From sequence record OZ196285.1: 64,000 nt of DNA; one strand, given 5' to 3'. The notes beneath the pieces were generated by a model. It did not search any database and was not told the origin of the DNA. It worked only from the letters and a program-made list of their open reading frames with translations. The stretch's first letter is position 1; each line of letters opens with the position of its first letter. The translations under genes and the position numbers were made by a program. Positions 14,899-29,423 of the stretch are shown here, one piece after another.

Positions 14899-14922
14899 AA
14901 AAAAAGGACGCCTTAGCGTCCT
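14899..14922 (-). terminator. Rho-independent terminator
   Basis: AGGACGC-loop-GCGTCCT followed by a T run on the minus strand. Confidence 0.75.
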
Positions 14923-15443
14923 TTAGTTTTTTTATATTTCGCTTTCTTATTCTTTCGATTAATCTTGCGAACTTCTTTTCGTTTAGCGATTTTATCAGCT
15001 CTTCGCACTGCATCGTAATCAGCAGCACAAGACGCTGCAAACGCATCAGGCTTGAATACAGGCTCCTGACCTACATAACCCAAGATCGTGCCCTTAGCTT
15101 CGTTATACGCAATGCTAGACTTATGTTTCGGGTCAGGATTGATATCGACGTGAACTTCAAAGCCACGAGGACCGCACATTGGCTTAACGCGCAACGCACA
15201 TTCACCTGCTTTGTAGACTTCATTCATTAGACGACTGCGAATACCGTCAGTCGCGTTCATGTATGCAGGTTCAGTTTCAACCATCTTGAAGACTTGAGCA
15301 CCTTTACTGCCTTCCAAGTGAATTATGATTACAGTCGCATAACTGATTAAATCACTCTTTCGCTTACTGTCACATCCGACATAAATCGTGCTGCTCGGGT
15401 GACTATTGCATATCGCTGTTTCTATTGCTTCCCAATCAAACAT
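14913..15443 (-). CDS. RNase H-like protein, YkuK/DUF458 family
   Basis: IYVGCDS, YATVI..H...GA, RLMNEV, EVHVDIN...KS and AASCAAD motifs; basic C-terminal tail. Confidence 0.85.
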   Translation of the reverse strand: MFDWEAIETAICNSHPSSTIYVGCDSKRKSDLISYATVIIIHLEGSKGAQVFKMVETEPAYMNATDGIRSRLMNEVYKAGECALRVKPMCGPRGFEVHVDINPDPKHKSSIAYNEAKGTILGYVGQEPVFKPDAFAASCAADYDAVRRADKIAKRKEVRKINRKNKKAKYKKTKGR

Positions 15444-15455
15444 TGTTCACCTCAC

Positions 15456-15478
15456 AAAAAAGGCGGCATGAAGCCGCC
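15456..15478 (-). terminator. Terminator between the DUF2828 and RNase H-like genes
   Basis: GGCGGC-TTCAT-GCCGCC-TTTTT on the minus strand. Confidence 0.7.
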
Positions 15479-15487
15479 CCATTCTAG

Positions 15488-16936
15488 TTATACTGCGTAC
15501 CGGTCGATACCAACAGTCTTCATCATGATCTTCACTGGCTCAAGCTCGCCATCAAGTAAAGAAGTCAGGATAGATGGACTACAACCCGACACAAGTGCCG
15601 TACCTGCCTCACCCGTTTTCACTGGTACGTTGTCTAGACGACCGCGAATGTTCCAGAACGCTAGTTGCGGCATTTCGTAGCCCGCTGCTGCGTATTGAGC
15701 TTTGATAGCATCAAAGTTTGTTTCTGTGCGGCTTGGCCAACCACCACCGCATTTCGCAGTGTTGAATTCCATGTCAGACATGATCAACATCTTCGTAGGC
15801 ATTTCAGATTGTGGCAAGTTTGCACGCTGCGCACGCTCCAATAGCACTTCGAAACACTTCTGAATATCAGTGCTCATGTTCTCACCAGAACGACGCATGT
15901 TAGCAAGACGCGTTGACAGTGTATCACCAACAAGCTTGTGGAAATGTGGATCGCCTGAGAACGAAATGAACTGATCTTTGAAGATACCTTCGTTACGTTC
16001 AGCTACGTAGACACCAAGAGACATCGCTACGTCCATACAAGTTGTAACAGTGCCCTGTGAATAGCAGCTACCTTGTTCTGAGTTAATCGCACAATTCATT
16101 GAGCCAGACACATCAACAACAGGGATGATGCGCTCGTCAGACCCTTCCATGTAATTCGGAAGTGCTTTCCATTGCTGATCTGCTACACGTGAATCGCCCA
16201 TTCGTACGCTGCGAACAACGTCGTAAGGGAAGACTGCACCTGCATTGATCTTAGCTTCGCCTTTCTCAAGCTTGTTGATGTACTCACCGTAGTTCTCAGC
16301 CGCGTTACGACCGAATGCTTTCTGATAACGCGCAGACGCTACAGATGGCAACTTACCGAAGTCGATCTCGTTCCAGTTCTGTGAACACATTTTCTGTTCA
16401 ACAGTGTCAGACAGCGTAGAAATGACCTTACGCCATTGCTTCGATGTCACGCCAAGCGCCTTGATAGTGCGCTTAAACACGATACCGTTTTTACTCTTCT
16501 CACGAGGGAACCACTTCGCAGCCAGTGCGTTTTTGCCGTTCACGATTGCATTTGCCCATAGAGCAATTGCATCAGACTCAAGAGGAGTACCGAACGCAGT
16601 CACTAAGTCATCGAAACGACCTAATTCTGGCACCTTGTGCATTACAGCACGTGCAACGTCAGGGTTTTTCGCGATAAGTTCAGCGAAAATGCGACGGAAA
16701 GTACCGCGCTCACCTGCACCACCGCGCACGTCGCGAGACCATAGCAAGATACGTGTTGCTAGTTCAGGGTTTTCACCGTATGCGCGATTGAACGCATGTA
16801 CTGAATCTTTGTTACCGCGCATTGCTGCTACAGTAAAGAACAAGTTCAGACACTCGTTACCCGAAGTGCTGTGTGTAATTGCACCGTTTGCTGTACGTGC
16901 GTCGTTTGTGCTCATTGCGTTCATAAATGCTGACAT
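15488..16936 (-). CDS. DUF2828 TROVE-like/vWA protein (Ro60-related RNA-binding protein)
   Basis: T.NGA..H..S, RDVRGGAGER, GRFDDL, AAKW.PR and SVA..RY.KAF motifs; vWA MIDAS VVDVSGSM and MSDMEF. Start moved to 16936 (SD GAGGA). Confidence 0.9.
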   Translation of the reverse strand: MSAFMNAMSTNDARTANGAITHSTSGNECLNLFFTVAAMRGNKDSVHAFNRAYGENPELATRILLWSRDVRGGAGERGTFRRIFAELIAKNPDVARAVMHKVPELGRFDDLVTAFGTPLESDAIALWANAIVNGKNALAAKWFPREKSKNGIVFKRTIKALGVTSKQWRKVISTLSDTVEQKMCSQNWNEIDFGKLPSVASARYQKAFGRNAAENYGEYINKLEKGEAKINAGAVFPYDVVRSVRMGDSRVADQQWKALPNYMEGSDERIIPVVDVSGSMNCAINSEQGSCYSQGTVTTCMDVAMSLGVYVAERNEGIFKDQFISFSGDPHFHKLVGDTLSTRLANMRRSGENMSTDIQKCFEVLLERAQRANLPQSEMPTKMLIMSDMEFNTAKCGGGWPSRTETNFDAIKAQYAAAGYEMPQLAFWNIRGRLDNVPVKTGEAGTALVSGCSPSILTSLLDGELEPVKIMMKTVGIDRYAV

Positions 16937-16984
16937 TGTGTATTTCCTCTTAAATAATATGCTGTAAAATGTCTTATGCGTTGT

Positions 16985-17013
16985 ATTATACACACGTTTT
17001 TACGAGTGTAAAC
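16985..17013 (-). promoter_or_regulatory. Early promoter of the DUF2828 gene
   Basis: GTTTAC-17 bp-TATAAT, the T4 early consensus. Confidence 0.8.
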
Positions 17014-17035
17014 AACATTTTCAAGTTTTTTTTAA

Positions 17036-17356
17036 TTATCGCTGCATCGGATTTCTGCGAGTAAATGCCGTACCATTCTTGTGTACTTCGACAAGAATAT
17101 TACCTGCTGTACCGTAACTCGCACGAACAGTACGATACCCGTATTTCTCAAACCAATTGCGAATGATCGTCGCTCCACGCTTGTCTGTGTCAATTACATG
17201 AACTGGCACTTTGAACGTAATCGGAAACACCTGATTCGCTTCTACTGCTGCCATAAATTCAGTTTCACACTTTGACGTGTAGTGGTCGGTCAGTGTTTTA
17301 CGCTCATCAGCAATGCGCGTTTCGATTGCATCTTGAAGTTTGGTATATTCAATCAT
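17036..17356 (-). CDS. Hypothetical protein
   Basis: 106-aa ORF in a tightly packed minus-strand run. Confidence 0.7.
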   Translation of the reverse strand: MIEYTKLQDAIETRIADERKTLTDHYTSKCETEFMAAVEANQVFPITFKVPVHVIDTDKRGATIIRNWFEKYGYRTVRASYGTAGNILVEVHKNGTAFTRRNPMQR

Positions 17357-17361
17357 GGTGA

Positions 17362-17685
17362 TTATCCATTATTCTCGCGAATTAACAGAGTCACGTATGA
17401 GAATGATACCGCGTTGTATTCACGATAATCTGCGTCATGGCGACCGAATTCAGCGTCGAAGTTAAAAAATCCCTCATCACGAAGCACTTCATGAATAAGT
17501 GTCATGTATTCCGAACACGCATCGCTTTGTGAGTCAAGTGTAATTTGCATTTTCAAAGGGAATCGATATCCCTTTGACGAGTCAATCAAATCTGCAATCG
17601 ATTTGCGTAGCTTGACTGTGAAGTCAGTTGCACGCTGAGAACGATTGTCTTTGACTTTCGAAACTAAGTTGTCATATAAACTCAT
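17362..17685 (-). CDS. Hypothetical protein
   Basis: 107-aa ORF, coupled overlap with its neighbour. Confidence 0.7.
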   Translation of the reverse strand: MSLYDNLVSKVKDNRSQRATDFTVKLRKSIADLIDSSKGYRFPLKMQITLDSQSDACSEYMTLIHEVLRDEGFFNFDAEFGRHDADYREYNAVSFSYVTLLIRENNG

Positions 17686-17978
17686 GATTGTACCTTAGGC
17701 AGCATTGAAACTGTCAGTTTAGGTTCGTTAAGACGACCGCGAAATTTCACAAGCATTCGGTGACTGAAGTCGTCGGGATGCTCTTCAAGATGGGCTGCAA
17801 ACTCCCACAGACGACAGTCGTTGCGCATTGCTCGACCGATAGTGTGATGATAAGCTGATAAGTCAGTCTCATCATTCAGAAACTGCTCACGCGCTTCTGG
17901 TGGGCTATTTTCCCAAAGTCCCTTCAACCAACGCTGACAGTGTGCAGCTAGAATATGTTTCACTAGAAATGTTTTCAC
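17682..17978 (-). CDS. Hypothetical protein
   Basis: 98-aa ORF with ATGA overlaps. Confidence 0.7.
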   Translation of the reverse strand: MKTFLVKHILAAHCQRWLKGLWENSPPEAREQFLNDETDLSAYHHTIGRAMRNDCRLWEFAAHLEEHPDDFSHRMLVKFRGRLNEPKLTVSMLPKVQS

Positions 17979-18346
17979 ATGTAATCCTTAATGTCACCAA
18001 CAAAATGACGAATGCATGAGCTATCAAGTCGAGGACGCGTGTCTTCTTCTGCAATAGCAGGTAAAATGTATTGATCATTAAAAGGCTGACCACTTGCCTT
18101 TGCGATTTCGAGCGCATCACCGCGATTGAAATACTCACCGCAGAAATTCACAAACCCCTGCCCGCGATCACCGAGTTCACTTCGATGTCGAATCGTACAA
18201 CCAAGCTCTTTAAGAGTCTTGATTATAGGCGACATGTTTCTACCAAAGTGACAGCTATCAACGACGACGAGATCTTTCACTGTACCGTCAGGGTACGTTA
18301 CTTCAATCGCGTTCGCAGCAGCAGAGATTACATTAATATGTTCCAT
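17975..18346 (-). CDS. Conserved phage hypothetical protein
   Basis: ISAAAN...QGFVNFCGEYF.R..A..IA...GQ pattern is common in phage proteins; function unknown. Confidence 0.7.
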   Translation of the reverse strand: MEHINVISAAANAIEVTYPDGTVKDLVVVDSCHFGRNMSPIIKTLKELGCTIRHRSELGDRGQGFVNFCGEYFNRGDALEIAKASGQPFNDQYILPAIAEEDTRPRLDSSCIRHFVGDIKDYM

Positions 18347-18347
18347 A

Positions 18348-18680
18348 CTATCTCCGTGTAAAAATTGAGCCTAACTGACTATACTTGTTGCTGTGTAGCA
18401 ACATTTGTTTCATTCGAGCGAGTGCAACTGAATTGCTCGTCACTAGAACGATAGTTTTTGGAAAGTTACCGTGGTCGATAGCATAACTTAAAATATCATA
18501 ACCTTCACCATCGTAAGTTCCCAAGTCGTTGTCCATGAACAGAGTGATGTCAGTCAAGTTCGTGAACTTAACGTATTTCATCCCATCTTCGAACGTTCGA
18601 ATCGTGAGTTTTTCGTCATCGAGAACGTGATCAGCAGTCATCTTGTTGATATCACGCAAATCATCGATTAGCACGTACAT
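18348..18680 (-). CDS. Cyclic-phosphate-processing receiver (cREC-like) domain protein
   Basis: LIDDLR, MDNDLG...GYD and VTSN motifs. Confidence 0.7.
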   Translation of the reverse strand: MYVLIDDLRDINKMTADHVLDDEKLTIRTFEDGMKYVKFTNLTDITLFMDNDLGTYDGEGYDILSYAIDHGNFPKTIVLVTSNSVALARMKQMLLHSNKYSQLGSIFTRR

Positions 18681-18946
18681 ACATCAATCTCCACGGCATG
18701 TAAGTCTACAAGCCAATAAGTTAAATCATAAGCAGAAGCTAAAGTCGGAGTATACGAAATCCAATAATGCATGTTATTAGACATCGATTCTAGATAGAAC
18801 ACTGCTTCGTCAGCAGACACGCGATAGATGAATTCTGAATTCATGTACGCATCAACAACTTTAGTACGAGGATCGATGATAACATCGAACCCAGCTTGCG
18901 TAAACAAGCTTGCAATTGTCTCGTGTTCAGTCAGAAGTAATGACAT
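18668..18946 (-). CDS. Hypothetical protein
   Basis: Start moved to MSLLL at 18946 (SD GAGA). Confidence 0.6.
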   Translation of the reverse strand: MSLLLTEHETIASLFTQAGFDVIIDPRTKVVDAYMNSEFIYRVSADEAVFYLESMSNNMHYWISYTPTLASAYDLTYWLVDLHAVEIDVCTC

Positions 18947-19007
18947 TTTCGTTTCTCTCGTTCGCTTCGATAAATACAAATATACAGATACAGTAAGGAC
19001 TTGTCAA

Positions 19008-19385
19008 ATGAAAGATGAAAAAATCTCAAACTTTTGTGAATACCTAGAAGAGAGTTGGGTTGAACGTAAGTGGAAAGAGTTTAAAGATGGCGGCGAACAG
19101 CGCACGTTGAAAAGCTTAGGTAAGAAAATGACCAAGCTCAGTAAGACGATGAAGCAAGCTGAGAGCAACGAGAACCGCAAAAGATACGAAGCAGCAGAAA
19201 TGAACTTCAAGAAGATACGAATGGACGCTACTCACGCGCTGCGTACAGCCCAGAAAGTGTCGAAAGGAAAGAACATGAGCGTTGATATGTATGAGGCGCT
19301 TAAAGTCATTGAGAGTGAGCTACAGAGCTGGATTCAATATGCCAACGATGGTTTATTGAGATTAATGACGAATCAGTTAATTTAA
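19008..19385 (+). CDS. Late-expressed basic helical protein; possible internal head protein
   Basis: GATAAATA at 18969, SD AAGGA, N-terminal F.EYLEES; start moved from 18828. Confidence 0.6.
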   Translation: MKDEKISNFCEYLEESWVERKWKEFKDGGEQRTLKSLGKKMTKLSKTMKQAESNENRKRYEAAEMNFKKIRMDATHALRTAQKVSKGKNMSVDMYEALKVIESELQSWIQYANDGLLRLMTNQLI

Positions 19386-19388
19386 ACC

Positions 19389-19415
19389 AAAAAAGCCCGC
19401 ATTGAGCGGGCTTTT
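19389..19415. terminator. Bidirectional terminator
   Basis: AAAAAAGCCCGC-ATTGA-GCGGGCTTTT between convergent ORFs. Confidence 0.85.
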
Positions 19416-19418
19416 GTT

Positions 19419-19658
19419 TTAATGGTTATGGCGTAACTTGCGATTGATCGTTTGATCTACAACCGTGGAGTACATTAAATGTTCTTTATAATATTTCTCA
19501 TCAACTCGATTGCATTGGAATTGTCGAAAGTCTTTGCGCAGTCTCGCAATGAATTTATTCAGTGCTTTGCGTACTTGGCAAACTTCGTTTAGTTCCATGC
19601 CTTTTAGCGTATCTTCAGAAAGTATTTCCATGATTGTTACCTCTAGGTTATTAGACAT
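19419..19658 (-). CDS. Hypothetical protein
   Basis: 79-aa ORF ending at a terminator. Confidence 0.55.
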   Translation of the reverse strand: MSNNLEVTIMEILSEDTLKGMELNEVCQVRKALNKFIARLRKDFRQFQCNRVDEKYYKEHLMYSTVVDQTINRKLRHNH

Positions 19659-19727
19659 AAAGGCGGGGTCAGGACTCGAACCTAACGTGTAACCATTCCC
19701 ACCACCGAGAAAGTTACACCATGCTGA

Positions 19728-19943
19728 CTAGTAAGCCATGCTTTGAAGACGTTTCATTCGTTCTTTAAGCTCAAGATCTTCAAGATCTACCGCTTCGACT
19801 TTCACTTCTTCTGTATCAGGCTTTTCATCTTGTTTTGATTTGAGACCGATATTGTCCCACAATGGACTATTACGCCAGTTGTCGTTATAGCCATTGCCAA
19901 CGCCTCGACCTTGCCTTGCGTGTGATTTATTTGCTTGACTCAT
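19728..19943 (-). CDS. Hypothetical protein
   Basis: 71-aa ORF with a TAATG overlap. Confidence 0.65.
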   Translation of the reverse strand: MSQANKSHARQGRGVGNGYNDNWRNSPLWDNIGLKSKQDEKPDTEEVKVEAVDLEDLELKERMKRLQSMAY

Positions 19944-20170
19944 TATTCGTTTGACTTCTTCGTAACTTGTGAAGCAACAGCAGCAGTTGCACCCGCAGCA
20001 GCGACTTTAGCACCAGTCTTAGCAGCTTTACCCGCTTTCTTAGCACCAGATTTCACGCGATCAGACATTGAACGCTTTTTCTTTTCAGGCTTCTTCTTGT
20101 CATCGGAAGGCTTTTCGTTTTTCTCTTCTTCTAACTGCCCCATGAATTGATCAAATGTTTTGTCACTCAT
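19943..20170 (-). CDS. Lys/Ala-rich basic protein; candidate internal head protein
   Basis: MSDKTFDQFMGQLEE N-terminus; CTAAATA promoter at 20202-20208. Confidence 0.6.
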   Translation of the reverse strand: MSDKTFDQFMGQLEEEKNEKPSDDKKKPEKKKRSMSDRVKSGAKKAGKAAKTGAKVAAAGATAAVASQVTKKSNE

Positions 20171-20204
20171 TGTGAGTTTCTCCATTGTGTGTGTATGAGT
20201 GTAT

Positions 20205-20582
20205 TTAGAATAACTTTTCTGTTACCACTAACTCAAGTTCAGAACTCATTCGAGTTTGAGTTGGGTTCATCAAAATTTCATCAATAGAGAATCGAGCACG
20301 CTTATTTGACATGTTCAATGACATATCAAGCCAACGGTCGCGATTTTCATCAGTACCGAACCAACGACGCTGACCGCGAAGCTGTGGGCTGCTACGCTGC
20401 GAGAAGTCATTGACGATAGAATACACGTATCGACCGTGAATAACGATAGCAGACAAGTGTGTAGTCGTCTTAACGACATTCTTAACGATAGTATCAGAAT
20501 GACGCAACTCAAATAGAACAGTCGCGTCGGGCATCTTAGAAATGCGTGCAATTTTGGCAGGTGAAACGAATTTCTCAAACAT
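20205..20582 (-). CDS. Hypothetical protein
   Basis: 125-aa ORF with SD GAGGA. Confidence 0.7.
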   Translation of the reverse strand: MFEKFVSPAKIARISKMPDATVLFELRHSDTIVKNVVKTTTHLSAIVIHGRYVYSIVNDFSQRSSPQLRGQRRWFGTDENRDRWLDMSLNMSNKRARFSIDEILMNPTQTRMSSELELVVTEKLF

Positions 20583-20647
20583 GATTTATTCCTCTTTTGT
20601 TTTACTCAGCATCGCACATTACGACAGTTTTGTAAACCACAAAAACA

Positions 20648-20670
20648 AAAAAGCCCCAATTAAGGGGCTT
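20648..20670 (-). terminator. Terminator ending the tRNA/ncRNA transcript
   Basis: AAGCCCC-TTAATT-GGGGCTTTTTT on the minus strand. Confidence 0.85.
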
Positions 20671-20685
20671 ATTCGTGCAATAATC

Positions 20686-20877
20686 AGACATTCGTGAACA
20701 GTTTTAAAGTCTTTCGCATAAATCACATTTGACTTTCATGTTTAACGATACATGAATCCCTAACGACGAATCGTCAGTCGTGCCTTCGAGCGTATTGCTT
20801 TAAATCACCGAGAAAGCGGCTATGCGTTGCTCTATTCTTTTAAGTAAGTTTTGTTAGTTGGTTGCAGTACAATGTCT
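20686..20877 (-). ncRNA. ~190-nt structured RNA carrying the CWGCAA motif (element A)
   Basis: Closing helix AGACATT/AATGTCT, then GTA-CTGCAA; internal hairpins TTCATG/CATGAA, AAAGTC/GACTTT and GACGATTCGTC; no ORF. Confidence 0.6.
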
Positions 20878-20887
20878 TTTGCAAAAT

Positions 20888-20976
20888 TGGCGGAAGCACT
20901 GGGAGTCGAACCCAGAGAACGCTATTAACGTCCGACACCTTAGCAGGGTGCTGTCATACCATTAGACCATGCTTCC
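20888..20976 (-). tRNA. tRNA-Ser(GCT)
   Basis: Cloverleaf, long variable arm, G73, CCA. Confidence 0.95.
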
Positions 20977-20982
20977 GTAATG

Positions 20983-21059
20983 TGGTGCTCAACCCGAGAT
21001 TCGAACTCGGACGTTCTAGTGTTTGAAACTAGTGACTCTGCCAATTGGCCTAGTTGAGC
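20983..21059 (-). tRNA. tRNA-Leu(CAA), short variable loop
   Basis: Cloverleaf, loop TTCAAAC, CCA. Confidence 0.9.
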
Positions 21060-21065
21060 GATGTT

Positions 21066-21142
21066 TGGTACGCGTGGGCGGATTCGAACCGCCATCCCTG
21101 AGATTTTAAGCCTCATGCCTCTGCCAATTGGACCACACGCGC
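21066..21142 (-). tRNA. tRNA-Leu(TAA), short variable loop
   Basis: Cloverleaf, loop CTTAAAA, CCA. Confidence 0.92.
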
Positions 21143-21144
21143 AT

Positions 21145-21218
21145 TGGAGCTCGTACAGAGAATCGAACTCTGACCGTGAGATTTGCAATCTCCCATACTA
21201 CCGTTATACGATACGAGC
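21145..21218 (-). tRNA. tRNA-Cys(GCA)
   Basis: Cloverleaf, U73, CCA. Confidence 0.93.
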
Positions 21219-21233
21219 ATTAAAAATGTACTT

Positions 21234-21310
21234 TGGGGTGACCGACGGGGATCGAACCCGCATCTTCCGGAATCACAACCCGGAGGTATTTCCACTTCAC
21301 CCACAGCCAC
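21234..21310 (-). tRNA. tRNA-His(GTG)
   Basis: Cloverleaf, C73, CCA; base -1 is T. Confidence 0.93.
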
Positions 21311-21402
21311 ACCAAAGTACACTTCGGGACATATAACGTCTGTCAACCGGACTCATTTACGTGGGTCATTCGAGCAAAGCACAACTTTGCTAGTAAGTTT
21401 TC

Positions 21403-21630
21403 TTAACTGAGATAAATTCTATCAGGAGAGAGTTCGCGATTAAACATTTTTCTAAAGAAAATTGCAACGTCATCACTAGTGATATTCGACTCGATTTGTT
21501 GTGCAAGCTCAAGCACTTTAACGCGCTTATAGCCTTTACGCCAACAATCAAACATCAATCGATCCATTTGCTTCAATTTCTCGACTTGGTTCGAGTGAAC
21601 ATACTCGTGGGTTTCTAATAGCGAACTCAT
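21403..21630 (-). CDS. Hypothetical protein
   Basis: 75-aa ORF between tRNAs with a GAGA SD. Confidence 0.55.
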   Translation of the reverse strand: MSSLLETHEYVHSNQVEKLKQMDRLMFDCWRKGYKRVKVLELAQQIESNITSDDVAIFFRKMFNRELSPDRIYLS

Positions 21631-22178: not shown

Positions 22179-22321
22179 AAAGACGATATTTCTCATTTAA
22201 TCTGCACACGGGCTAGACACCATATTTTAATGGTCTGAGTGAAGAACCTCTGCACAACAATCCCGATCTAATTGCGTTATGTGGTGACTGTCACGAGGAA
22301 TCGTATCTTCAAATTAGTATC

Positions 22322-22530
22322 AGGCAATCGCGAAATGTTTTATCGTCTTTTGCATAAATCGCTATTGACTATCTTGTGTATTCTGTACAAGAACATATCA
22401 CATTTTCGCAAGTGAGGCTATCATATCATCACTGATATGCACGTCTTGTAATGCTTGAAGTGACACGTTTCCGCTCACCCGCACCAAGAGCCATCTTTGA
22501 GTTAGAAAGATTAGTTGCAGTACATTGCCT
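22322..22530 (-). ncRNA. ~210-nt multi-hairpin RNA carrying the CWGCAA motif (element B)
   Basis: Closing helix AGGCAAT/ATTGCCT, then GTA-CTGCAAC as in element A; at least five internal hairpins. Confidence 0.6.
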
Positions 22531-22649: not shown

Positions 22650-22726
22650 ATCATTAAGAATCGAACCATAAGATCTTGTGACACGATGGTAGTAAAGAGA
22701 GTGTCTATCTCATGTGTTCGAAAATT

Positions 22727-22801: not shown

Positions 22802-22807
22802 AAATTG

Positions 22808-23017
22808 TTATAACTTGACGACGTTAATAACTCTCCAAGAGAACAATCCGTCAAGATCTTCTGCCGACTCACCTGTACATGCAGAGAGTTCAGCAACAAC
22901 TTTCGCCTCGATTTCATCGACGCTTAGTGAATCATCTACGATATACGCTTCTTCGTTGTTATTACCACCGAACGCGCCATTAAAATCGTATTCACACCAT
23001 ACAGAAATGAATTTCAT
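22808..23017 (-). CDS. Acidic hypothetical protein
   Basis: Start moved to MKFISVW, because the longer ORF overlaps tRNA-Thr. Confidence 0.6.
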   Translation of the reverse strand: MKFISVWCEYDFNGAFGGNNNEEAYIVDDSLSVDEIEAKVVAELSACTGESAEDLDGLFSWRVINVVKL

Positions 23018-23041
23018 TATATATTCCAAAGTTGTAAAAAA

Positions 23042-23116
23042 TGGTGCACCCACTCAGACTCGAACTGAGATAGTCGGATTACAAAACCGATATAATTGCC
23101 TTTATATTATGGGTGC
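23042..23116 (-). tRNA. tRNA-Thr(TGT)
   Basis: Cloverleaf, CCA. Confidence 0.9.
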
Positions 23117-23119
23117 GTT

Positions 23120-23233
23120 ACTGAGTGTCGTTTATACCGCGTCTCCAAGACCTGAGCTACCAACTCAGCGTGAGATTCGAACTCACAACGTTTCTTGTAT
23201 CGAAAGAATTTAAAATTGCTGTAAACACTCAAT
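23120..23233 (-). ncRNA. Circularly permuted tRNA-mimic RNA (YrlA-like) with CAGCAA (element C)
   Basis: 9-bp closing helix ATTGAGTGT/ACACTCAGT, TTA-CAGCAA, canonical T arm GTGAG-TTCGAAT-CTCAC, then CTGAG/CTCAG and GTCT/AGAC hairpins; no anticodon arm and no CCA. Confidence 0.7.
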
Positions 23234-23239
23234 GGTATC

Positions 23240-23314
23240 TGGAAGGGCTAACAGGATTTGAACCCGTACTCCGAAAGTCAAAGTTTCGTATGCTACCAGT
23301 TACATCATAGCCCT
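23240..23314 (-). tRNA. tRNA-Gln(TTG)
   Basis: Cloverleaf, CCA. Confidence 0.92.
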
Positions 23315-23318
23315 ATTG

Positions 23319-23512
23319 TTTGTCAAGACATCTTACACGACGGCGTAAGTGAACGTTCTAATGGTTAGTTCAGAATCCACGTCATAATATTGATGCTATA
23401 TTCGCGCCACTATCTGCTGATAGATATGTTATGCATCATCTATGCAGACTCTTCTTGCGCTGTAAATTGCCTTCTTATGATATGAGACTGTCACTTCTCA
23501 AATCACGACAAA
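23319..23512 (-). ncRNA. ~195-nt multi-hairpin spacer RNA
   Basis: Closing TTTGTC/GACAAA plus four or more short hairpins; no ORF. Confidence 0.45.
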
Positions 23513-23513
23513 T

Positions 23514-23588
23514 TGGCGGTCCCGAAGGGAATCGAACCCTCATCTCAGCATAGACAGTGCAGCATAATTGCCATTATACGACGAGACC
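23514..23588 (-). tRNA. tRNA-Asp(GTC)
   Basis: Cloverleaf, G73, CCA. Confidence 0.93.
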
Positions 23589-23603
23589 TTTAAATTAAGT
23601 ACA

Positions 23604-23664
23604 GTAATCGTTTTAGTTTTTTTTCAAATAAAAAAAAATTTTAGTTTGTTTGCAGAATGATTAC
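23604..23664 (-). ncRNA. Minimal CWGCAA-motif hairpin (element D)
   Basis: GTAATC/GATTAC helix, ATT-CTGCAAAC, apical T8/A8 hairpin. Confidence 0.5.
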
Positions 23665-23671
23665 TTAAATC

Positions 23672-23747
23672 TGGCAGGGACGCTCAGACTCGAACTGAGA
23701 CCAACGGATTTGGAATCCGTCATGCTAGCCATTAACACCACATCCCT
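23672..23747 (-). tRNA. tRNA-Trp(CCA)
   Basis: Cloverleaf, CCA. Confidence 0.93.
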
Positions 23748-23756
23748 AAAATAAAT

Positions 23757-23830
23757 TGGTAGCCCCAAGCAGACTCGAACTGCTAACTAGCGATTATCGG
23801 TCGCACGTTTTACCTTTAAACTATGGAGCT
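23757..23830 (-). tRNA. tRNA-Ile(GAT)
   Basis: Cloverleaf; loop CCGATAA has C33. Confidence 0.88.
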
Positions 23831-23894
23831 AGAGTGTGCTCGAAAGCACACAATGTTAATCGGTTAAGTGACTAGCTCGACCAATGTAACATGC

Positions 23895-23987
23895 TGGAGG
23901 AAAGTAACAGAGTCGAACTGTCACCACGCTACTAACGCAGTGGGCTGGTTTTCAAGACCAGTTGCGAACCACATCGCCCTACCTTCC
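23895..23987 (-). tRNA. tRNA-Ser(TGA)
   Basis: Cloverleaf, long variable arm, CCA. Confidence 0.9.
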
Positions 23988-24001
23988 ATTCAATGAGTTG
24001 T

Positions 24002-24265
24002 CTACTTGTTACGACCCCACATTGTTTTATCAAATTGACTGAGATACTTTTCAACCGCTGCAACTTGTGCTGAAGAAACAACCCACTCATTATCGCGTGA
24101 TTTTGTTTCGGCAGGTGAGCGTAGTCTAGCTCCAAGCTTCTGCATAGCGTTTCTATGCTTCTCTCTGTCCATCGAACCAGATACTAATGATCCAGATACA
24201 CCGTATACAACTTCATCAGAAGCAGACTCGGCGATGAACGCGTCGAATGTTTTTAGTTCTTTCAT
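24002..24265 (-). CDS. Candidate internal head protein
   Basis: LKTFDAFIAES resembles the T4 capsid-targeting sequence; CTAAATA at 24291-24297. Confidence 0.6.
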   Translation of the reverse strand: MKELKTFDAFIAESASDEVVYGVSGSLVSGSMDREKHRNAMQKLGARLRSPAETKSRDNEWVVSSAQVAAVEKYLSQFDKTMWGRNK

Positions 24266-24305
24266 TGTAGTTTTCTCTTATGTAAAACTATATTTAGAAC
24301 GAATT

Positions 24306-24382
24306 TGGATGCGTGAGAGTGGATTCGAACCACTGACCTCCGGCTTATGAGACCGACGAGCTGACCGCTGCTCTACTCCGCA
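24306..24382 (-). tRNA. tRNA-Met(CAT), initiator-like body
   Basis: D arm and variable loop resemble tRNA-fMet; one bulged base in the acceptor stem; CCA. Confidence 0.8.
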
Positions 24383-24387
24383 ATTGT

Positions 24388-24582
24388 TTATTTGCTGAAC
24401 TGAACTATACAAGTATCTGATTGATACACTAGTGTGCCAGTTGCTTCCGCGTCTATCTGAACGATACAGCCGTTAGCCCCATCTTCACCGCGTGATGCTA
24501 CATCTTTTACTGAAATACCGCTTGCACAAGCTGTTAGAGATAGTGCAAGTAAAGCTGCCATTATAGCTTTCATGATGCTCAC
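24388..24582 (-). CDS. Small lipoprotein
   Basis: Signal peptide with lipobox LSLTAC; 64 aa. Confidence 0.7.
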   Translation of the reverse strand: MSIMKAIMAALLALSLTACASGISVKDVASRGEDGANGCIVQIDAEATGTLVYQSDTCIVQFSK

Positions 24583-24589
24583 CTTAATT

Positions 24590-24674
24590 TGGTGGGCGAT
24601 AGAGGAATCGAACCTCTCTTCCCGTTAGGGACACGGGGTTACAGCCCGCTACTCCACCTTGGAGCATATCGCCC
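24590..24674 (-). tRNA. tRNA-Tyr(GTA)
   Basis: Cloverleaf with variable arm, CCA. Confidence 0.93.
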
Positions 24675-24680
24675 AGGAAT

Positions 24681-24754
24681 TGGTACTCCGTACGAGGATC
24701 GAACTCGTTCCCTGATCTTGAAAGGATCATGACCTACCATTAGTCCAACGGAGC
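24681..24754 (-). tRNA. tRNA-Glu(TTC)
   Basis: Cloverleaf, CCA. Confidence 0.93.
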
Positions 24755-24884
24755 ATTGAAAAAATATTTGTTAGCAAACTAGCAAGTTATTTGACATAAT
24801 CATTTAACGGGCCCAGCTAGTAGGCTAACAGATACTCTTTCAAGAATCTAGAGATAGTTTAGCGACTTCTCAACGGTCGAAATA

Positions 24885-24959
24885 TGGTGGGTCCACAGAG
24901 ACTCGAACTCTGACAGAATGGTTAAAAGCCACATATGCTACCAATTACATCATAGACCC
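24885..24959 (-). tRNA. tRNA-Lys(TTT)
   Basis: Cloverleaf, CCA. Confidence 0.92.
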
Positions 24960-24965
24960 AGAATA

Positions 24966-25040
24966 TGGTGCACCCTCTCGGAATCGAACCGAGCACTGTG
25001 GGACTTCACTCCACCGCTTTTCCTGATAAGCTAAGGGTAC
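24966..25040 (-). tRNA. tRNA-Phe(GAA)
   Basis: Cloverleaf, atypical loop GTGAAGT, CCA. Confidence 0.82.
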
Positions 25041-25048
25041 ATCTAATT

Positions 25049-25123
25049 TGGCGCCTCATGTAAGATTCGAACTTACGACTCCCGAGTTAACAGCTCGGCA
25101 CTCTACCACTGAGTTAATGAGGC
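25049..25123 (-). tRNA. tRNA-Asn(GTT)
   Basis: Cloverleaf, G73, CCA. Confidence 0.95.
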
Positions 25124-25500
25124 ATATTCTTTTGCAAGGCGTGTTCTTCTCGATGACAGTTAGAGCAAAGCATTATACACTTCTCTAATTCAGCTTCAAT
25201 CAATTCCCAACGCATAGTATTGCCGTTCGAGATACCGAAGTCTTTGCCACCGGGTTCTACGTGATGAAACTCAAGAGCATCAATACATCTATCGTAGCCA
25301 CACCGTTCACAACAACCGCCCTTCGATTCAACCGCCCGCAACTTAGTGCGTCGTCGATAAGAAACGACTGCTTTCTTATTCTTTTCTTTACGTTCTTCAT
25401 CGCTGTACAGTCGTCTATGTTTTCCCATATACAGACCGCCACATTTGCGACTACAGAATTTATTAAGTGCATCAGCACCACAATTTAAACATTTGTTCAT
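25114..25500 (-). CDS. HNH endonuclease, free-standing homing endonuclease-like
   Basis: CxxC zinc fingers, CERCG...LEFHH...C..LCSNCHREEH. Confidence 0.9.
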   Translation of the reverse strand: MNKCLNCGADALNKFCSRKCGGLYMGKHRRLYSDEERKEKNKKAVVSYRRRTKLRAVESKGGCCERCGYDRCIDALEFHHVEPGGKDFGISNGNTMRWELIEAELEKCIMLCSNCHREEHALQKNMPH

Positions 25501-25633
25501 GAGTTACCCCTTTATTAAAAAGAAAGTAGCTCAAGGCATGAGATTTCGATCCGCCACATTCGTAAGTGAATGACTCTGTTACAGTGTTGATTAAGTTCTC
25601 GCGTTACTGAGAATCACAACACTGTCTTTAATT

Positions 25634-25710
25634 TGGTACGCAGAGAGAGATTCGAACTCTCAACTCACAGTTTCTAAAACTGCCGGCTCTGCCAATTGGC
25701 CTACCTGCGC
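25634..25710 (-). tRNA. tRNA-Leu(TAG), short variable loop
   Basis: Cloverleaf, CCA. Confidence 0.92.
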
Positions 25711-25740
25711 ATTATTCTTGTTTAGAACTTTCGTTCTTAC

Positions 25741-25933
25741 ATTGTACATGATGTTTTCATCGTTGTAAACATCTTTTTTGAAAAACTTTTCGTTCGTTTT
25801 TGAACGTTTAACTGCTTTTCTCTATTGTACATGATGTTTTCGTTGAAGTAAACATCTTTTTTAATTTATTTTGAAGAACTTAACGTTTTTGTTTCTATGC
25901 GTTAATTCTAACATCGCTCAGACAAGTGTTAAA
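25741..25933 (-). promoter_or_regulatory. Three tandem sigma70-like promoters
   Basis: TTTACA-17-TACAAT (25741-25769), TTTACT-17-TACAAT (25824-25852) and TTTAAC-17-TAGAAT (25905-25933), each with an upstream AAAAAGATG. Confidence 0.85.
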
Positions 25934-26010
25934 CATCTTTTTAGAAAAGATTTCGTTAAATTCTATCATCACGACAGTAGATAACGAGACACGGTCCTAA
26001 GCGTATCGTT

Positions 26011-26086
26011 TGGCATCCCACAGAAGATTCGAACTTCTAACCTGCGCCTTCGTAGGACGCTGCTCTTCCAATTGAGCTAGTGGGAC
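26011..26086 (-). tRNA. tRNA-Arg(ACG)
   Basis: Cloverleaf, CCA. Confidence 0.95.
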
Positions 26087-26094
26087 ATTAATAA

Positions 26095-26169
26095 TGGTCG
26101 GAGTAGAAGAATTCGAATCTTCACCGCTCGGCCCCAAACCGACTATGCTGCCATTAACACCATACTCCG
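26095..26169 (-). tRNA. tRNA-Pro(TGG)
   Basis: Cloverleaf, C1:G72, CCA. Confidence 0.93.
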
Positions 26170-26210
26170 AAAACACTTGACAACTAATGGGTTGTGATTG
26201 TCTAGTGCGT

Positions 26211-26256
26211 TTATTTGTTTATCATACTCTGTAAACAAAGTGTGTTAAACAAATAA
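26211..26256 (-). promoter_or_regulatory. Promoter flanked by an 11-bp inverted repeat
   Basis: TTTAAC-17-TATGAT inside TTATTTGTTTA...TAAACAAATAA. Confidence 0.6.
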
Positions 26257-26276
26257 TTTCTTTTTCTTTCGCCCAT

Positions 26277-26301
26277 AAAAAAGGACGCTATCTGCGTCCT
26301 C
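26277..26301 (-). terminator. Rho-independent terminator
   Basis: AGGACGC-AGATA-GCGTCCT followed by a T run. Confidence 0.75.
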
Positions 26302-26560
26302 AAGTATACTTCTATGTTATACTATCGGACTACGTTTGTGGATCCCATTTTTGTTCAATGCTCGGATTTGACAGATACACCGCGCCTGTTCGCATAAAAT
26401 CATTGCGTAAAGCTTTAGGTGAATGTGAAATCGAATGTGGCATCAATTGGGTCTCTTTTAACGAAAATTTTAATAAGTTTTTTTTATTCTACAATTGTAC
26501 TTATAAGAGTAAAATCAAGGTTTCGGGCTTTTTTCGCAAAAAACCCGAAAAAATTACAAT

Positions 26561-26800
26561 TTATTTTTTAAAGTGTTCACGCTTGCTGCATTCAGCAAGA
26601 ATTTCATTGTCATAATGATTCTTCAGTTGCTTGAATTTAGCGTGCTGATCAGACGTTAGCTCGTTCTCATCACGTAGGTTCTTCAAGAACCCTAGAGGTT
26701 TACGAAACGACTTGCGATACTCGTCTAGACGCTTGTCAGTTAGACCTACAAGCTGCTTTGGAGTTAGCAACGTTTTATTGATGTCGAATTTATTACTCAT
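26561..26800 (-). CDS. Hypothetical basic protein
   Basis: 79 aa, SD GAGAGG. Confidence 0.7.
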   Translation of the reverse strand: MSNKFDINKTLLTPKQLVGLTDKRLDEYRKSFRKPLGFLKNLRDENELTSDQHAKFKQLKNHYDNEILAECSKREHFKK

Positions 26801-26826
26801 GTGTAACCTCTCATTGTTATAAATGG

Positions 26827-26979
26827 CATAGTTTGCTTTTGCAGTGCACCGTCCCGTTTCTCAATTACTCTGCTCTACAGACGTTAGCTGCTTGATTAAC
26901 AATTGCAGTCGCATTTGGTATAACATGTCGCCATCATCTTCCAGATGAATCTAGCGTATGCACTCAAAAGCAAACTATG
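26827..26979 (-). ncRNA. 153-nt RNA closed by a 21-bp helix with one bulge
   Basis: CATAGTTTGCTTTTG/CAAAAGCAAACTATG is a perfect 15-bp pair, extended by AGTGCA/TGCACT. Confidence 0.55.
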
Positions 26980-26987
26980 TAAAAAAA

Positions 26988-27467
26988 TTATGTTCTAGTG
27001 ATTGTAAACTTACCTTGTCGTTTACCGACGTATTCAAACCCTAGTTGTTCGATGCTCGACTTCATGTTCTTGCTATTCAAAATAGCGTTGTACAATCGAT
27101 CTAGACGCGAATCAAACCCACTGAATACAATCTCATTAATGGTAGGCTTAAACTTGATATATTCAATCGTGACGTACATCACAGAGCCCAACACAGGCGC
27201 TGCGTTATTAGTGCTAACACGTTCTACATTGTAATCATTCCAGTCAGTGCTCTTTATAGAAGAAGCACCAAACACGATTTCATATGAATCACCGTTTCCG
27301 TTTAATGGCGAGGCGCCCCACATGTAGTAGTGACCACCGACTTCAAAATATGTGGTGTCCATTTCGGGATGCATTCTAAATTGCATGTTACTCATATCAG
27401 CATCAGCACCGTATGAAGTAACAGCAGGTCTAATAGATTCAGATAAAAATTGTTCTAATGTTTTCAT
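26988..27467 (-). CDS. Candidate internal head protein
   Basis: MKTLEQFLSES N-terminus; GATAAATA at 27489-27496. Confidence 0.65.
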   Translation of the reverse strand: MKTLEQFLSESIRPAVTSYGADADMSNMQFRMHPEMDTTYFEVGGHYYMWGASPLNGNGDSYEIVFGASSIKSTDWNDYNVERVSTNNAAPVLGSVMYVTIEYIKFKPTINEIVFSGFDSRLDRLYNAILNSKNMKSSIEQLGFEYVGKRQGKFTITRT

Positions 27468-27491
27468 TGAAAACTCCGATTAAACACATAT

Positions 27492-28010
27492 TTATCTAAG
27501 GCTGAACTGCAAGTTGCGCCAATCCCAAGAACTATTGCCTTTGCGATTGTGCCATGCGTGCCAGTCTATTTTAATGGGACAGTTCTTCGAACCGACACGA
27601 GCGTAGAAACGTTCGTATGTGTCAGTCTCTCTAGCCTGCTCTCTAAGCAACTTTTGACGTTCATTGATATAATCACTGCACGCTTTGTTATAGTCTGCCC
27701 TAGAGAACTTGTGTTGCTTACTGCGTTGCGTGCTGAATTTCATATTCAGATAAGGTCGAATCACATTGACGTGAGTACGTGACCATCGCATACTGAAGCT
27801 TTCTTCAGTCTGTCCTAGAATTTCACCAGTCTTCTTGTTGCGTGACAAAAGCACCCAACAGCGTTCACGAGTATAATCAGCCCGTGACATCACATTTACA
27901 GATTCAGTATGACGCATGTTATACAAGCGTCGTACGTCTGAACGAACCCCGGGACTCATTTTGTCTCTAGTCTCACGGTCAAATGCATGTGCAAATCGCA
28001 ATAGTTTCAT
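27492..28010 (-). CDS. Arg-rich hypothetical protein
   Basis: Start moved to MKLLRF at 28010 (SD GAGGA); the longer ORF runs into an ncRNA. Confidence 0.65.
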   Translation of the reverse strand: MKLLRFAHAFDRETRDKMSPGVRSDVRRLYNMRHTESVNVMSRADYTRERCWVLLSRNKKTGEILGQTEESFSMRWSRTHVNVIRPYLNMKFSTQRSKQHKFSRADYNKACSDYINERQKLLREQARETDTYERFYARVGSKNCPIKIDWHAWHNRKGNSSWDWRNLQFSLR

Positions 28011-28023
28011 GATATTTTCCTCT

Positions 28024-28267
28024 TGTCGCCGCCCTGTGGAATCGAACCACTTCAAACACAACACATCATCAACCCGATAAGAGTTTCGAAAGTCAGAGCC
28101 TACCAGCATGTCAGATCTTGAGCTTTTTTTATTGCATCAGAGAAATTCGACTCCCTCTGATCTTTTTCTTATTACTCGCCCGAGTGATTCGCAACGGAAG
28201 TCAGTAATTAATTGACGACTGAAGTAATGTTCGGGAAACACTGCGTATTGTACACCGAGTAGGCGGC
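28024..28267 (-). ncRNA. ~240-nt RNA closed by a tRNA-like acceptor stem and T arm
   Basis: 5' GCCGCCT pairs with 3' GGGCGGC after GTGG-TTCGATT-CCAC; several internal hairpins; dedicated promoter. Confidence 0.6.
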
Positions 28268-28289
28268 ATAATGTTAATTTCTAGACACG

Positions 28290-28318
28290 AGCTTAACGCT
28301 TTTTTTAATGTCTGTCAA
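28290..28318 (-). promoter_or_regulatory. Sigma70 promoter
   Basis: TTGACA-17-TAAGCT just upstream of the 240-nt RNA. Confidence 0.75.
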
Positions 28319-28341
28319 CGTTTATTTTCACTTTTTTAATA

Positions 28342-28419
28342 TGGTGACCCTCGCGGGACTCGAACCCAGCTATCTTTCGGTTATGAGCCGACTGCTTTTA
28401 CCTGTTAAGCTAAAGGGCC
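28342..28419 (-). tRNA. tRNA-Ile2(CAT), lysidine type (alternatively Met)
   Basis: GGCCCTT acceptor and CTCATAA loop as in ileX-type tRNAs; CCA. Confidence 0.8.
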
Positions 28420-28420
28420 A

Positions 28421-28783
28421 TTATGATAACCACTTACCGACTTTAGCCGCGAAGATTGTCGATTCTTCATTTATCAGTGCAGTGCTCTTGATTTGATGAA
28501 ACGCATCTTGTTGATGCATCTGATCAAGCTTGTGAGCGCACTTGGCTAAGTCTTTAATCGTTTTCATTATTTCTTCTGTATCGAGTTGAGACGTTAAGGG
28601 ATGATGCACTAGATCGTCTAGCACAGCTTCTATCTGCCCGTAACAGCCCATACCGATGAAGTTAACAATAAGTCGATACTTCATTTCAACAGAGAACGAA
28701 CAATGCTTTCTCAGATTGCGTTTTACAACTTCACAACGAGTCAAGCATACATCTAGTTCTGTCTTAATTGCGTCAAACGGCAT
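28421..28783 (-). CDS. Hypothetical protein
   Basis: 120 aa, SD AGGTGA. Confidence 0.65.
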   Translation of the reverse strand: MPFDAIKTELDVCLTRCEVVKRNLRKHCSFSVEMKYRLIVNFIGMGCYGQIEAVLDDLVHHPLTSQLDTEEIMKTIKDLAKCAHKLDQMHQQDAFHQIKSTALINEESTIFAAKVGKWLS

Positions 28784-28800
28784 ATTGTCACCTTTTTAAA

Positions 28801-28923
28801 TGGTGGAGAGTAGTGGATTCGAACCACTGACCTAAAGACCCATTCGTTTTAATGTTTGCAGCATGAATGCTTTACAGAATTCTTTTAACATTCTTTTGCT
28901 CTACCAAACTGAGCTAACTCTCC
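28801..28923 (-). ncRNA. 123-nt tRNA-like RNA with an expanded anticodon domain carrying CTGCAA (element E)
   Basis: Perfect acceptor GGAGAGT/ACTCTCC-A-CCA, canonical D and T arms, AAAGA/TCTTT stem enclosing about 53 nt. Confidence 0.8.
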
Positions 28924-28935
28924 AGAAAAAACACA

Positions 28936-29057
28936 TTGATGCGGGTGCAGGATTCGAACCTGCGTCACGATCTTATGAATGATATGCGATTTGATTGCTG
29001 AATACAAGTTTGTCAACTTGCGTTTGCTACGTGTGCTAACCACTACACCAACCCGCA
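28936..29057 (-). ncRNA. 122-nt tRNA-like RNA with an expanded anticodon domain carrying CAGCAA (element F)
   Basis: TGCGGGT/ACCCGCA acceptor, D-like arm, T arm GCAGG-TTCGAAT-CCTGC; ends CAA rather than CCA. Confidence 0.8.
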
Positions 29058-29100
29058 TCAATGTGTTCTTGTGATGCTACGAATCAACGTAGCATCCGAA

Positions 29101-29233
29101 CCTGTTTTATATTGCCTTAGCTAACTAACATAATCTGAAATCATGCGCTTTAATATAGGGAGGCGTCCCCATTCGCACAGTTAGCATAGAAAAGCTATAC
29201 ACCCATTCTTCTATCATGTCCAAGGCAAACAGG
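29101..29233 (-). ncRNA. ~130-nt nested-helix RNA
   Basis: Nested pairs CCTGTT/AACAGG, TGCCTT/AAGGCA, GCTAACT/AGTTAGC and TGCG/CGCA. Confidence 0.45.
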
Positions 29234-29301
29234 ACTATGAAAACGAGTGCGAGAAAATAGACAATCAAATTGCATTACCTCGCTAATTTATGAAAGCACA
29301 T

Positions 29302-29423
29302 TGGTCGAGTGTACTAGAATCGAACTAGTCCCACGATCTCCTAATGATATGCTAAATTGGTTGCTGAATACAAGCTTGTCAACTTGCGTTATGCTACGTG
29401 TGCTGCCACTACACCAACACTCG
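29302..29423 (-). ncRNA. 122-nt tRNA-like RNA, paralogue of element F (element G)
   Basis: CGAGTGT/ACACTCG-A-CCA, T arm ACTAG-TTCGATT-CTAGT; insert nearly identical to element F. Confidence 0.8.

Follow-up and report, generated by a model that had tools for sequence, protein, structure and literature searches.

A 64,000-nucleotide (nt) stretch of sequence record OZ196285.1, called the window below, comes from Vibrio phage F86, a KVP40-type member of the T4 family. On its minus strand lie seven noncoding RNAs, here named A to G, that share one module—a 7-base-pair (bp) helix, a 3-nt spacer and the hexamer CWGCAA—and, further downstream on the same strand, a gene for a DUF2828/DUF7788 protein whose modeled structure resembles Ro60. 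We consider it likely that this stretch specifies a phage ribonucleoprotein with the architecture of Ro60/Y RNA but components from other families, and that its DUF2828 protein recognizes the module. DUF2828 genes occur together with module-bearing RNAs in bacterial contigs as well as in phages that differ greatly from one another, which suggests that the RNA–protein particle is widespread and has so far gone undescribed.

A shared module on diverse RNA bodies

The initial annotation of this DNA had proposed seven minus-strand elements carrying the hexamer, and all seven were recovered where it had placed them (Table 1). In RNAs A–D, C(A/T)GCAA stands 3 nt after the 5′ strand of the helix and the partner strand follows 46–192 nt downstream, so the helix joins both ends of the element. 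In RNAs E–G the two helix strands instead lie close together, forming a 7-bp hairpin around a 4-nt loop, and the spacer and hexamer come next; this settles the annotation's doubt over the pairing partner of CTTGT in F and G. Its claim that all elements share a helix stands, with the length corrected to 7 bp (AGTAATC/GATTACT in D, for example), while its description of the elements as unrelated-looking fails for two pairs of paralogues, A with B and F with G. The module has finer regularities as well: the second helix pair is nearly always G–C, the spacer has a central T, and the base after the 3′ strand is G.

The bodies carrying this module range widely. The tRNA cluster ends with the gene for RNA A; RNA D is the minimal form, with an A/U-rich loop and a 3′ GT. 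Within the terminal helix of RNA C, RNAalifold finds a T-arm-like hairpin and then a D-arm-like hairpin; RNA C is a permuted tRNA mimic of YrlA-like layout, opening at the module helix. RNA E has acceptor, D and T arms and passes the Rfam tRNA threshold (57.6 bits over 120 nt), with the 7-bp hairpin and its 4-nt loop in lieu of an anticodon arm. None of E, F and G was called as a tRNA by ARAGORN, and all three lack the 7-nt anticodon loop and 5-bp stem of a cloverleaf: roughly 50 nt containing the hairpin and CWGCAA occupy that position. Run without helix information supplied, RNAalifold predicted the hairpin together with acceptor, D and T arms for E/F/G and for the KVP40 genes annotated as tRNA-Pseudo-3/4/5, of which tRNA-Pseudo-4 is the RNA E homologue; therefore E–G are tRNA bodies with the module in place of the anticodon arm. 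The tRNA-shaped scaffolds envisaged at the outset are thus real for several carriers: C by its T and D arms, and E, F and G by their acceptor, D and T arms.

The module is concentrated where these RNAs lie. On the RNA strand of the tRNA region, 7 of 11 copies of CWGCAA have the helix context; on the opposite strand none of 4 do, and in the rest of the window, both strands together, 4 of 99. At gathering thresholds, Rfam returned only tRNAs and one tmRNA from the window and nine related loci.

Several other explanations of the sequence were considered and rejected. CUGCAAA as a mimic of the tRNA-Cys anticodon loop does not suit the half of the copies that read CAGCAA and lack U33, and no consistent closing stem is present. 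An archaeal-type bulge-helix-bulge intron in E–G lacks its second bulge or helix. Reading the reverse complement as a promoter or a MotA box puts the signal on the wrong strand, and the helix covariation indicates selection at the RNA level.

Conservation and covariation among relatives

BLAST found every element in Vibrio phages D481, K566, KVP40, nt-1 and ValKK3. Hexamer and spacing are constant across relatives, and the helices change in compensatory fashion in these five phages and in Aeromonas phage phiAS5, just as the first inspection had suggested when it noted varying helix sequences with pairing kept. For instance, the RNA B helix becomes AGACAAT/ATTGTCT in four relatives, the RNA D helix is AGCAATC/GATTGCT in KVP40, and the RNA G hairpin occurs in three sequences, each of them paired. 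The RNA F hairpin likewise covaries, with CGGCAA carried by KVP40, nt-1 and phiAS5. RNAalifold predicted the terminal helix of A/B across 10 homologues, again with compensatory changes. Phage phiAS5, whose DUF2828 protein is 47% identical, contains both element types with unrelated helix sequences.

The relatives also hold variants of their own. An eighth element type of 89 nt, AGCTTGC-ATA-CTGCAA ... GCAAGCT, occurs in KVP40 (18299–18387) and in the ValKK3/nt-1 loci L004 (17137–17225) and L003 (20693–20781); the covariance model described below (R1) did not find it in F86. The KVP40 genes tRNA-Pseudo-3 and tRNA-Pseudo-5 carry the variant hexamers CAGCAC and CTGCAT. In phiAS5, a 118-nt tRNA-like gene at 23760–23877 has two T-arm-like hairpins and no CWGCAA module, and lies about 150 nt from a module-bearing tRNA-like gene at 24028–24145.

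The module accompanies DUF2828 genes

Linkage between RNA and protein gene was examined in 80 IMG/VR viral loci selected solely for encoding DUF2828. When 120 permuted hexamers were scored in these loci for the arrangement "helix + 3 nt + hexamer", CAGCAA ranked first on the gene strand: it scored 125, the runner-up 72 and the median hexamer 21; its score on the opposite strand was an ordinary 40. A regular-expression scan for an exact 7-bp terminal stem, 3 nt and CWGCAA placed the nearest element, about 55 nt long, 25–66 nt past the gene end in 20 of the 80 loci and no more than about 420 nt past it in 40.

The initial annotation had proposed a covariance-model check of whether motif and DUF2828 co-occur, and they do. 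Model R1, built from 50 small elements and with E-values that are rough, gave 86 matches at E ≤ 0.1 in the 80 viral loci. Every match is on the strand of the gene, the opposite strand has none, and about 60 loci have at least one; RNA D scores 47 bits with this model. In an independent set of 42 GTDB loci from bacteria and metagenome-assembled genomes, outside the R1 training data, the model made 57 matches in 33 loci, all on the gene strand and mostly less than 600 nt from the gene. These matches are often in tandem. The complementary stem differs from one match to the next, and the N-U-N spacer, CAGCAA and the 3′ G recur in all of them; most of the GTDB loci that have no match are truncated at the gene.

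Individual phages repeat the pattern. In each of the Listeria phage LMTA-94, the Campylobacter phage CP30A and the Mycobacterium phage Gardann, two elements flank the DUF2828 gene. In the Felixounavirus AYO145A the gene lies immediately upstream of the tRNA cluster, the first gaps of which hold four elements; all four read AGACC(AA/GT)-NNN-CAGCAA and have a partner of 7 nt. DUF2828 was detected by tblastn in 711 of 50,697 phage records, and a search with the DUF2828 protein matched thousands of metagenome proteins, the top matches listed being all phage-like; DUF2828 genes have also been reported from plants and giant-virus-like sequences.

T4 itself served as the negative control, which consists of one 8-kb region and an argument from record sizes. 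That region, the T4 tRNA region including rnaC and rnaD, contains no CWGCAA and no R1 match, and the Escherichia, Salmonella and Shigella records among the tblastn matches listed are all 81–93 kb, not T4-sized. T4 stable RNAs C and D (species 1 and 2) had been put forward as a precedent. They are indeed small stable RNAs at the end of a tRNA cluster of T4 type, and the 3′ part of some resembles a T arm, but they lack the module and so offer no precedent for this RNA class; as homologues they were rejected on the same ground.

Two side observations concern the wider set of elements. In the alignment of the small elements (A2), the loops are A-rich (52% A) and contain 28 extra copies of GCAA against 5.3 expected from shuffles, with at least one in 20 of 50 elements and at least two in 8, a hint that an RNA may offer the binding site repeatedly or accommodate more than one protein. 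On one uncultivated phage contig (L047), a tmRNA at 8605–9054 (75.4 bits, Rfam) lies about 2.9 kb downstream of DUF2828 (match 4337–5755), in a run of tRNAs and six module-bearing elements.

A protein with a Ro60-like fold

By sequence search, the DUF2828 protein matches PHROG 850, annotated as "RNA-binding protein". Its AlphaFold model, computed from a 51-sequence alignment, has a predicted local distance difference test score (pLDDT) of 81. A Foldseek search of the PDB with this model returned seven matches with E ≤ 0.001, and every one is a Ro60 protein (from Thermus phage phiLo, Xenopus or human), at E-values of 1.5e-7 to 1.8e-5, TM scores of 0.46–0.61 and 517–583 alignment columns that span the whole protein length; the ranks below Ro60 are isolated vWA domains. 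The Ro60 likeness claimed in the initial annotation is thereby upheld, and the model predicts helical repeats arranged in a Ro60-like ring, which a vWA domain closes. Residues D275, S277, S279, T356 and D388 are invariant in 51 homologues and, from their DxSxS...T...D pattern, probably form a MIDAS-type metal site.

One relative already has a reported activity. Protein gp130 of the Felixounavirus Bas63 is 42% identical to the F86 protein over its full length, and a preprint describes it as countering the Ppl defence, notes its likeness to Ro60 and surmises that some annotated Bas63 tRNA genes are Y RNAs, with no RNA motif defined. The Bas63 locus resembles that of F86 in that a gene of the same protein family lies directly upstream of a tRNA cluster holding the same RNA elements, with three or four R1 matches between tRNA genes just downstream of the gp130 gene. 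The candidates here, unlike those of the preprint, are unannotated elements between the tRNA genes.

A copy of the module in the DUF2828 leader

Weak R1 matches at the 5′ end of DUF2828 pointed out a further copy of the module, in the leader of the DUF2828 mRNA (Table 1). KVP40, ValKK3, nt-1 and K566 have the same leader, with the hexamer CAGCAA, and in three unrelated IMG/VR contigs (L028, L041, L043) a 34-nt mini-element abuts the ribosome site. A module lying over the ribosome site and start codon is a classic arrangement for translational autoregulation by an RNA-binding protein. Judged from its sequence, the leader copy suggests autoregulation of DUF2828, and it is the best indirect sign that the DUF2828 protein itself may read the module.

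Phage D481 has a modified leader. A homing-endonuclease gene (7835–8425) is inserted just upstream of DUF2828, and the leader is shortened to GGAGC-TTA-CAGCA-ATG, in which the hexamer abuts the start codon.

Resemblance to Class I RNAs of Dictyostelium

The minimal form of the phage RNA has a counterpart among eukaryotes. The Rfam model of Dictyostelium Class I RNAs (RF01414) aligns with RNA D over the full length at 29.1 bits, under the gathering score of 41.5; it found no match in 14 other loci and did not find the remaining phage elements. In the Rfam consensus and in published D. discoideum sequences, Class I RNAs open with the 5′ strand of a 6-bp stem, which is followed by C, UUA and CAGCAA; after a variable, A-rich loop the stem returns, and UG comes last. 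They have been orphans since 2004, with an undefined mechanism, and are held to be unique to Dictyostelia; one direct binder is known, the RNA-recognition motif (RRM) protein Rnp1A.

The Class I layout—a short stem, the motif beside its 5′ strand, a variable loop, a 3′ CUG(U) and a length near 60 nt—is found in the small elements of phages and metagenome-assembled genomes. Both groups are about 42–65 nt long, with longer variants that contain inserts, and both have a 6–7-bp terminal stem, variable in sequence but paired, with a conserved G–C at the outer end; UUA-CAGCAA comes right after the 5′ strand, the variable loop is A-rich, and the 3′ end reads ...C-U-G(U). They differ in register, which is shifted by 1 nt (9 nt from the G to CAGCAA in phages, 10 nt in Dictyostelium), and in that the eukaryotic genes own separate promoters. 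A literature search turned up no publication that connects Class I RNAs with phages or with Ro60-like proteins, and the part of the proteome text contained in the supplement of a 2021 Dictyostelium paper gave no DUF2828 match, only an unrelated vWA protein. That the DUF2828-associated RNAs and Class I RNAs form one class spanning phages, bacteria, giant viruses and eukaryotes, with a DUF2828-family protein as the missing partner, is a tentative proposal whose chances we put slightly short of even.

A proposed particle and its alternatives

In the mechanism we favor, the DUF2828 ring protein would bind a composite site made of the 7-bp helix with its G–C second pair, the spacer with its central U, the single-stranded C(A/U)GCAA and the trailing G. 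This site would be presented by several carriers: the minimal RNA D of about 60 nt, RNAs A and B at about 200 nt each, the permuted tRNA mimic C, and the tRNA-like E, F and G. Embedded as they are in tRNA-cluster transcripts, A–G would be cut out by ordinary tRNA-end processing. Like those of Y RNAs, the variable RNA bodies could then act as adaptors, tethering the ring protein to a partner or gating its access to one; that partner might be a tRNA-binding enzyme, an RNA-decay enzyme or a defence protein of the host. The particle may serve anti-defence or RNA turnover. Because the leader module surrounds both the start codon and the ribosome site, the protein would also limit its own translation, throttling synthesis through the leader copy.

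The Ro60/Y RNA system, including YrlA and the Ro60-Yrl pair of Thermus phage phiLo, provides the template. Common to both are a protein with a ring of helical repeats and a vWA/MIDAS domain, a terminal stem of 5′ and 3′ strands with a short conserved single-stranded motif alongside, RNA genes that adjoin the protein gene (for DUF2828, in many lineages), and some RNAs that mimic tRNA with T and D arms. The differences are equally plain. The protein is DUF2828/DUF7788 here and TROVE there; each genome here has many RNAs, plus a copy in the gene's own leader; and the module here also takes the form of a closed hairpin at the anticodon position of otherwise complete tRNA-like RNAs. The YrlA model (RF02553) does not match any of A–G. 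Its sole match, at 29.1 bits (gathering score 69), spans the junction of F and E and was dismissed as an artefact of two adjacent tRNA-like genes.

A number of observations weigh against the Ro60-like particle. The RNA motif is different, CWGCAA after a 3-nt spacer here and GNCGAA/CGAA in Y RNAs. By sequence, Pfam assigns the protein to PF11443 and PF25043 only, not to TROVE (PF05731), and a profile search against PDB sequences reached TROVE proteins only at E 0.28 over 39 residues; phmmer and that profile search together returned designed armadillo repeats and this insignificant TROVE match, and nothing else. The protein thus has a Ro60-like fold yet is no TROVE member by sequence. The leader stem is weak on its own, at −2.9 kcal/mol. 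The pair counts of alignment A2 are circular because the R1 training stems were picked for complementarity; they were left unused, and the helix evidence counted comes only from independent hits, BLAST-found homologues and RNAalifold runs. According to the preprint, moreover, gp130 supplied alone and in trans relieved Ppl, so the anti-Ppl activity may not need phage RNAs, which may modulate gp130 rather than enable it. Finally, for the look-alike Class I RNAs of Dictyostelium, the one protein proven to bind directly, Rnp1A, is of the RRM type.

These last two points lend some weight to an alternative in which the RNAs are functionally connected with DUF2828 and the module is read by a different protein: an RNA chaperone of the host, a processing nuclease, or an RRM-type protein like the one in Dictyostelium. 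DUF2828, for its part, would work on or with the RNAs but would not be what recognizes CWGCAA. We regard this as unlikely. No other gene travels with the RNA: among neighbors in the 80 viral DUF2828 loci, PF04308 occurs in 2, and cREC, the 57B-like gene and three small open reading frames in none. The hosts span Vibrio, Mycobacterium, Listeria and Campylobacter, so one shared host reader is less likely, and the leader module is best explained by DUF2828's own product.

More doubtful still is the idea that no trans-acting particle exists and that the module is only a cis-acting signal for processing or stability, borne by the DUF2828 mRNA and the tRNA-cluster transcripts. The position of the elements between tRNAs, or in the 5′ and 3′ untranslated regions of the gene, is what such a signal would predict, but it accounts poorly for a module grafted into complete tRNA-like bodies and a T/D-arm mimic, for tandem arrays of two to four beside the gene on contigs without nearby tRNAs, and for the seven copies in F86 that sit 4–14 kb from the DUF2828 gene. 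That the elements are decaying tRNA genes with chance hexamers, as the KVP40 annotations tRNA-Pseudo-3, -4 and -5 and the silence of ARAGORN on E, F and G might suggest, is scarcely credible, given that the inserted hairpin covaries and the hexamer is fixed across genera, contradicting decay, and that the hexamer-permutation and strand controls speak against chance.

Genomic setting

The tRNA region occupies about 20.6–29.5 kb of the minus strand and contains 25–27 tRNA genes, small open reading frames and noncoding gaps; beyond it, downstream, Pfam identifies PF04308 and cREC genes in addition to DUF2828/DUF7788. The initial annotation had cast the DUF2828 protein, the YkuK-like nuclease and the cREC protein as a team. 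By the neighbor counts given above, with PF04308 in 2 of 80 viral DUF2828 loci and cREC in none, such a partnership is a lineage-specific feature at most.

Other genes nearby merit description. The 57B-like gene stands directly upstream of the tRNA/RNA region, as it does in T4 and KVP40, and is not tied to DUF2828 elsewhere. A tRNA-like gene at 24310–24381 (minus strand; 53.5 bits, Rfam) was missed by ARAGORN and has a bulged acceptor stem and a loop that reads as a CAU anticodon; a CAGCAA at 24397–24392, 10 nt upstream of it, lacks the canonical context of 7-bp helix and 3 nt. In Listeria phage LMTA-94, genes for an RtcB-type "tRNA-splicing ligase" and DUF1768 (6849–8881) lie 1.3–3.4 kb downstream of DUF2828, an RNA-repair neighborhood unlike that of the Vibrio phages.

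Table 1 Positions of the module-bearing RNAs, the DUF2828 gene with its leader, and neighboring features in the F86 window
Feature	Coordinates	Strand	Details
PF04308 RNase-H-like (YkuK-like) gene	14913–15443	−	Pfam
DUF2828/DUF7788 gene	15488–16936	−	482 aa from ATG at 16936; homologues share ATG; Pfam PF11443 + PF25043
DUF2828 promoter and 5′ leader with module	16932–17012	−	sequence; promoter scan, 11/12 matches
Leader promoter	17012 to 16985	−	−35 TTTACA from 17012; −10 TATAAT to 16985
Leader module, 5′ part	16974–16959	−	stem AGACATT 16974–16968; TTA; CAGCAT 16964–16959
Leader Shine-Dalgarno	16950–16946	−	
Leader module, 3′ stem strand	16937–16932	−	AATGTC, overlapping ATG
cREC-domain gene	18348–18680	−	Pfam
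Terminator-like intrinsic hairpin	20646–20670	−	right after RNA A; end of tRNA/RNA transcription unit
RNA A	20684–20877	−	~190 nt; AGACATT/AATGTCT, GTA, CTGCAA; motif 20867–20862, partner 20692–20686
RNA B	22320–22530	−	~210 nt; AGGCAAT/ATTGCCT, GTA, CTGCAA; motif 22520–22515, partner 22328–22322
RNA C	23120–23231	−	~112 nt; TGAGTGT/ACACTCA, TTA, CAGCAA; motif 23221–23216, partner 23128–23122
RNA D	23601–23665	−	~63 nt; AGTAATC/GATTACT, ATT, CTGCAA; motif 23655–23650, partner 23609–23603
RNA E	28801–28923	−	tRNA-like chimera; hairpin 28882–28865, ATG, CTGCAA 28861–28856
RNA F	28936–29057	−	tRNA-like chimera; GCAAGTT-GACA-AACTTGT (core 29020–29005), ATT, CAGCAA 29000–28995
RNA G	29302–29423	−	tRNA-like chimera, paralogue of F; hairpin core 29386–29371, ATT, CAGCAA 29366–29361
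57B-like protein gene	30110–30565	−	PHROG 755 "RNA ligase", 2H-phosphoesterase type

Significance

Before this analysis, one DUF2828 member had been reported to defeat a bacterial defence, and the RNA partner and motif of the family were not previously known. The module would supply an RNA family with a simple, searchable signature and a testable protein–RNA pair. It would explain the long "tRNA pseudogenes" of KVP40-type phages, as well as unannotated gaps in phage tRNA clusters, and for the DUF2828 mRNA it predicts a likely autoregulatory leader. Should the Dictyostelium link be true, the particle would amount to a second Ro/Y-RNA world, parallel to the first, and an orphan class of eukaryotic noncoding RNA would gain both a candidate protein partner and an evolutionary origin.

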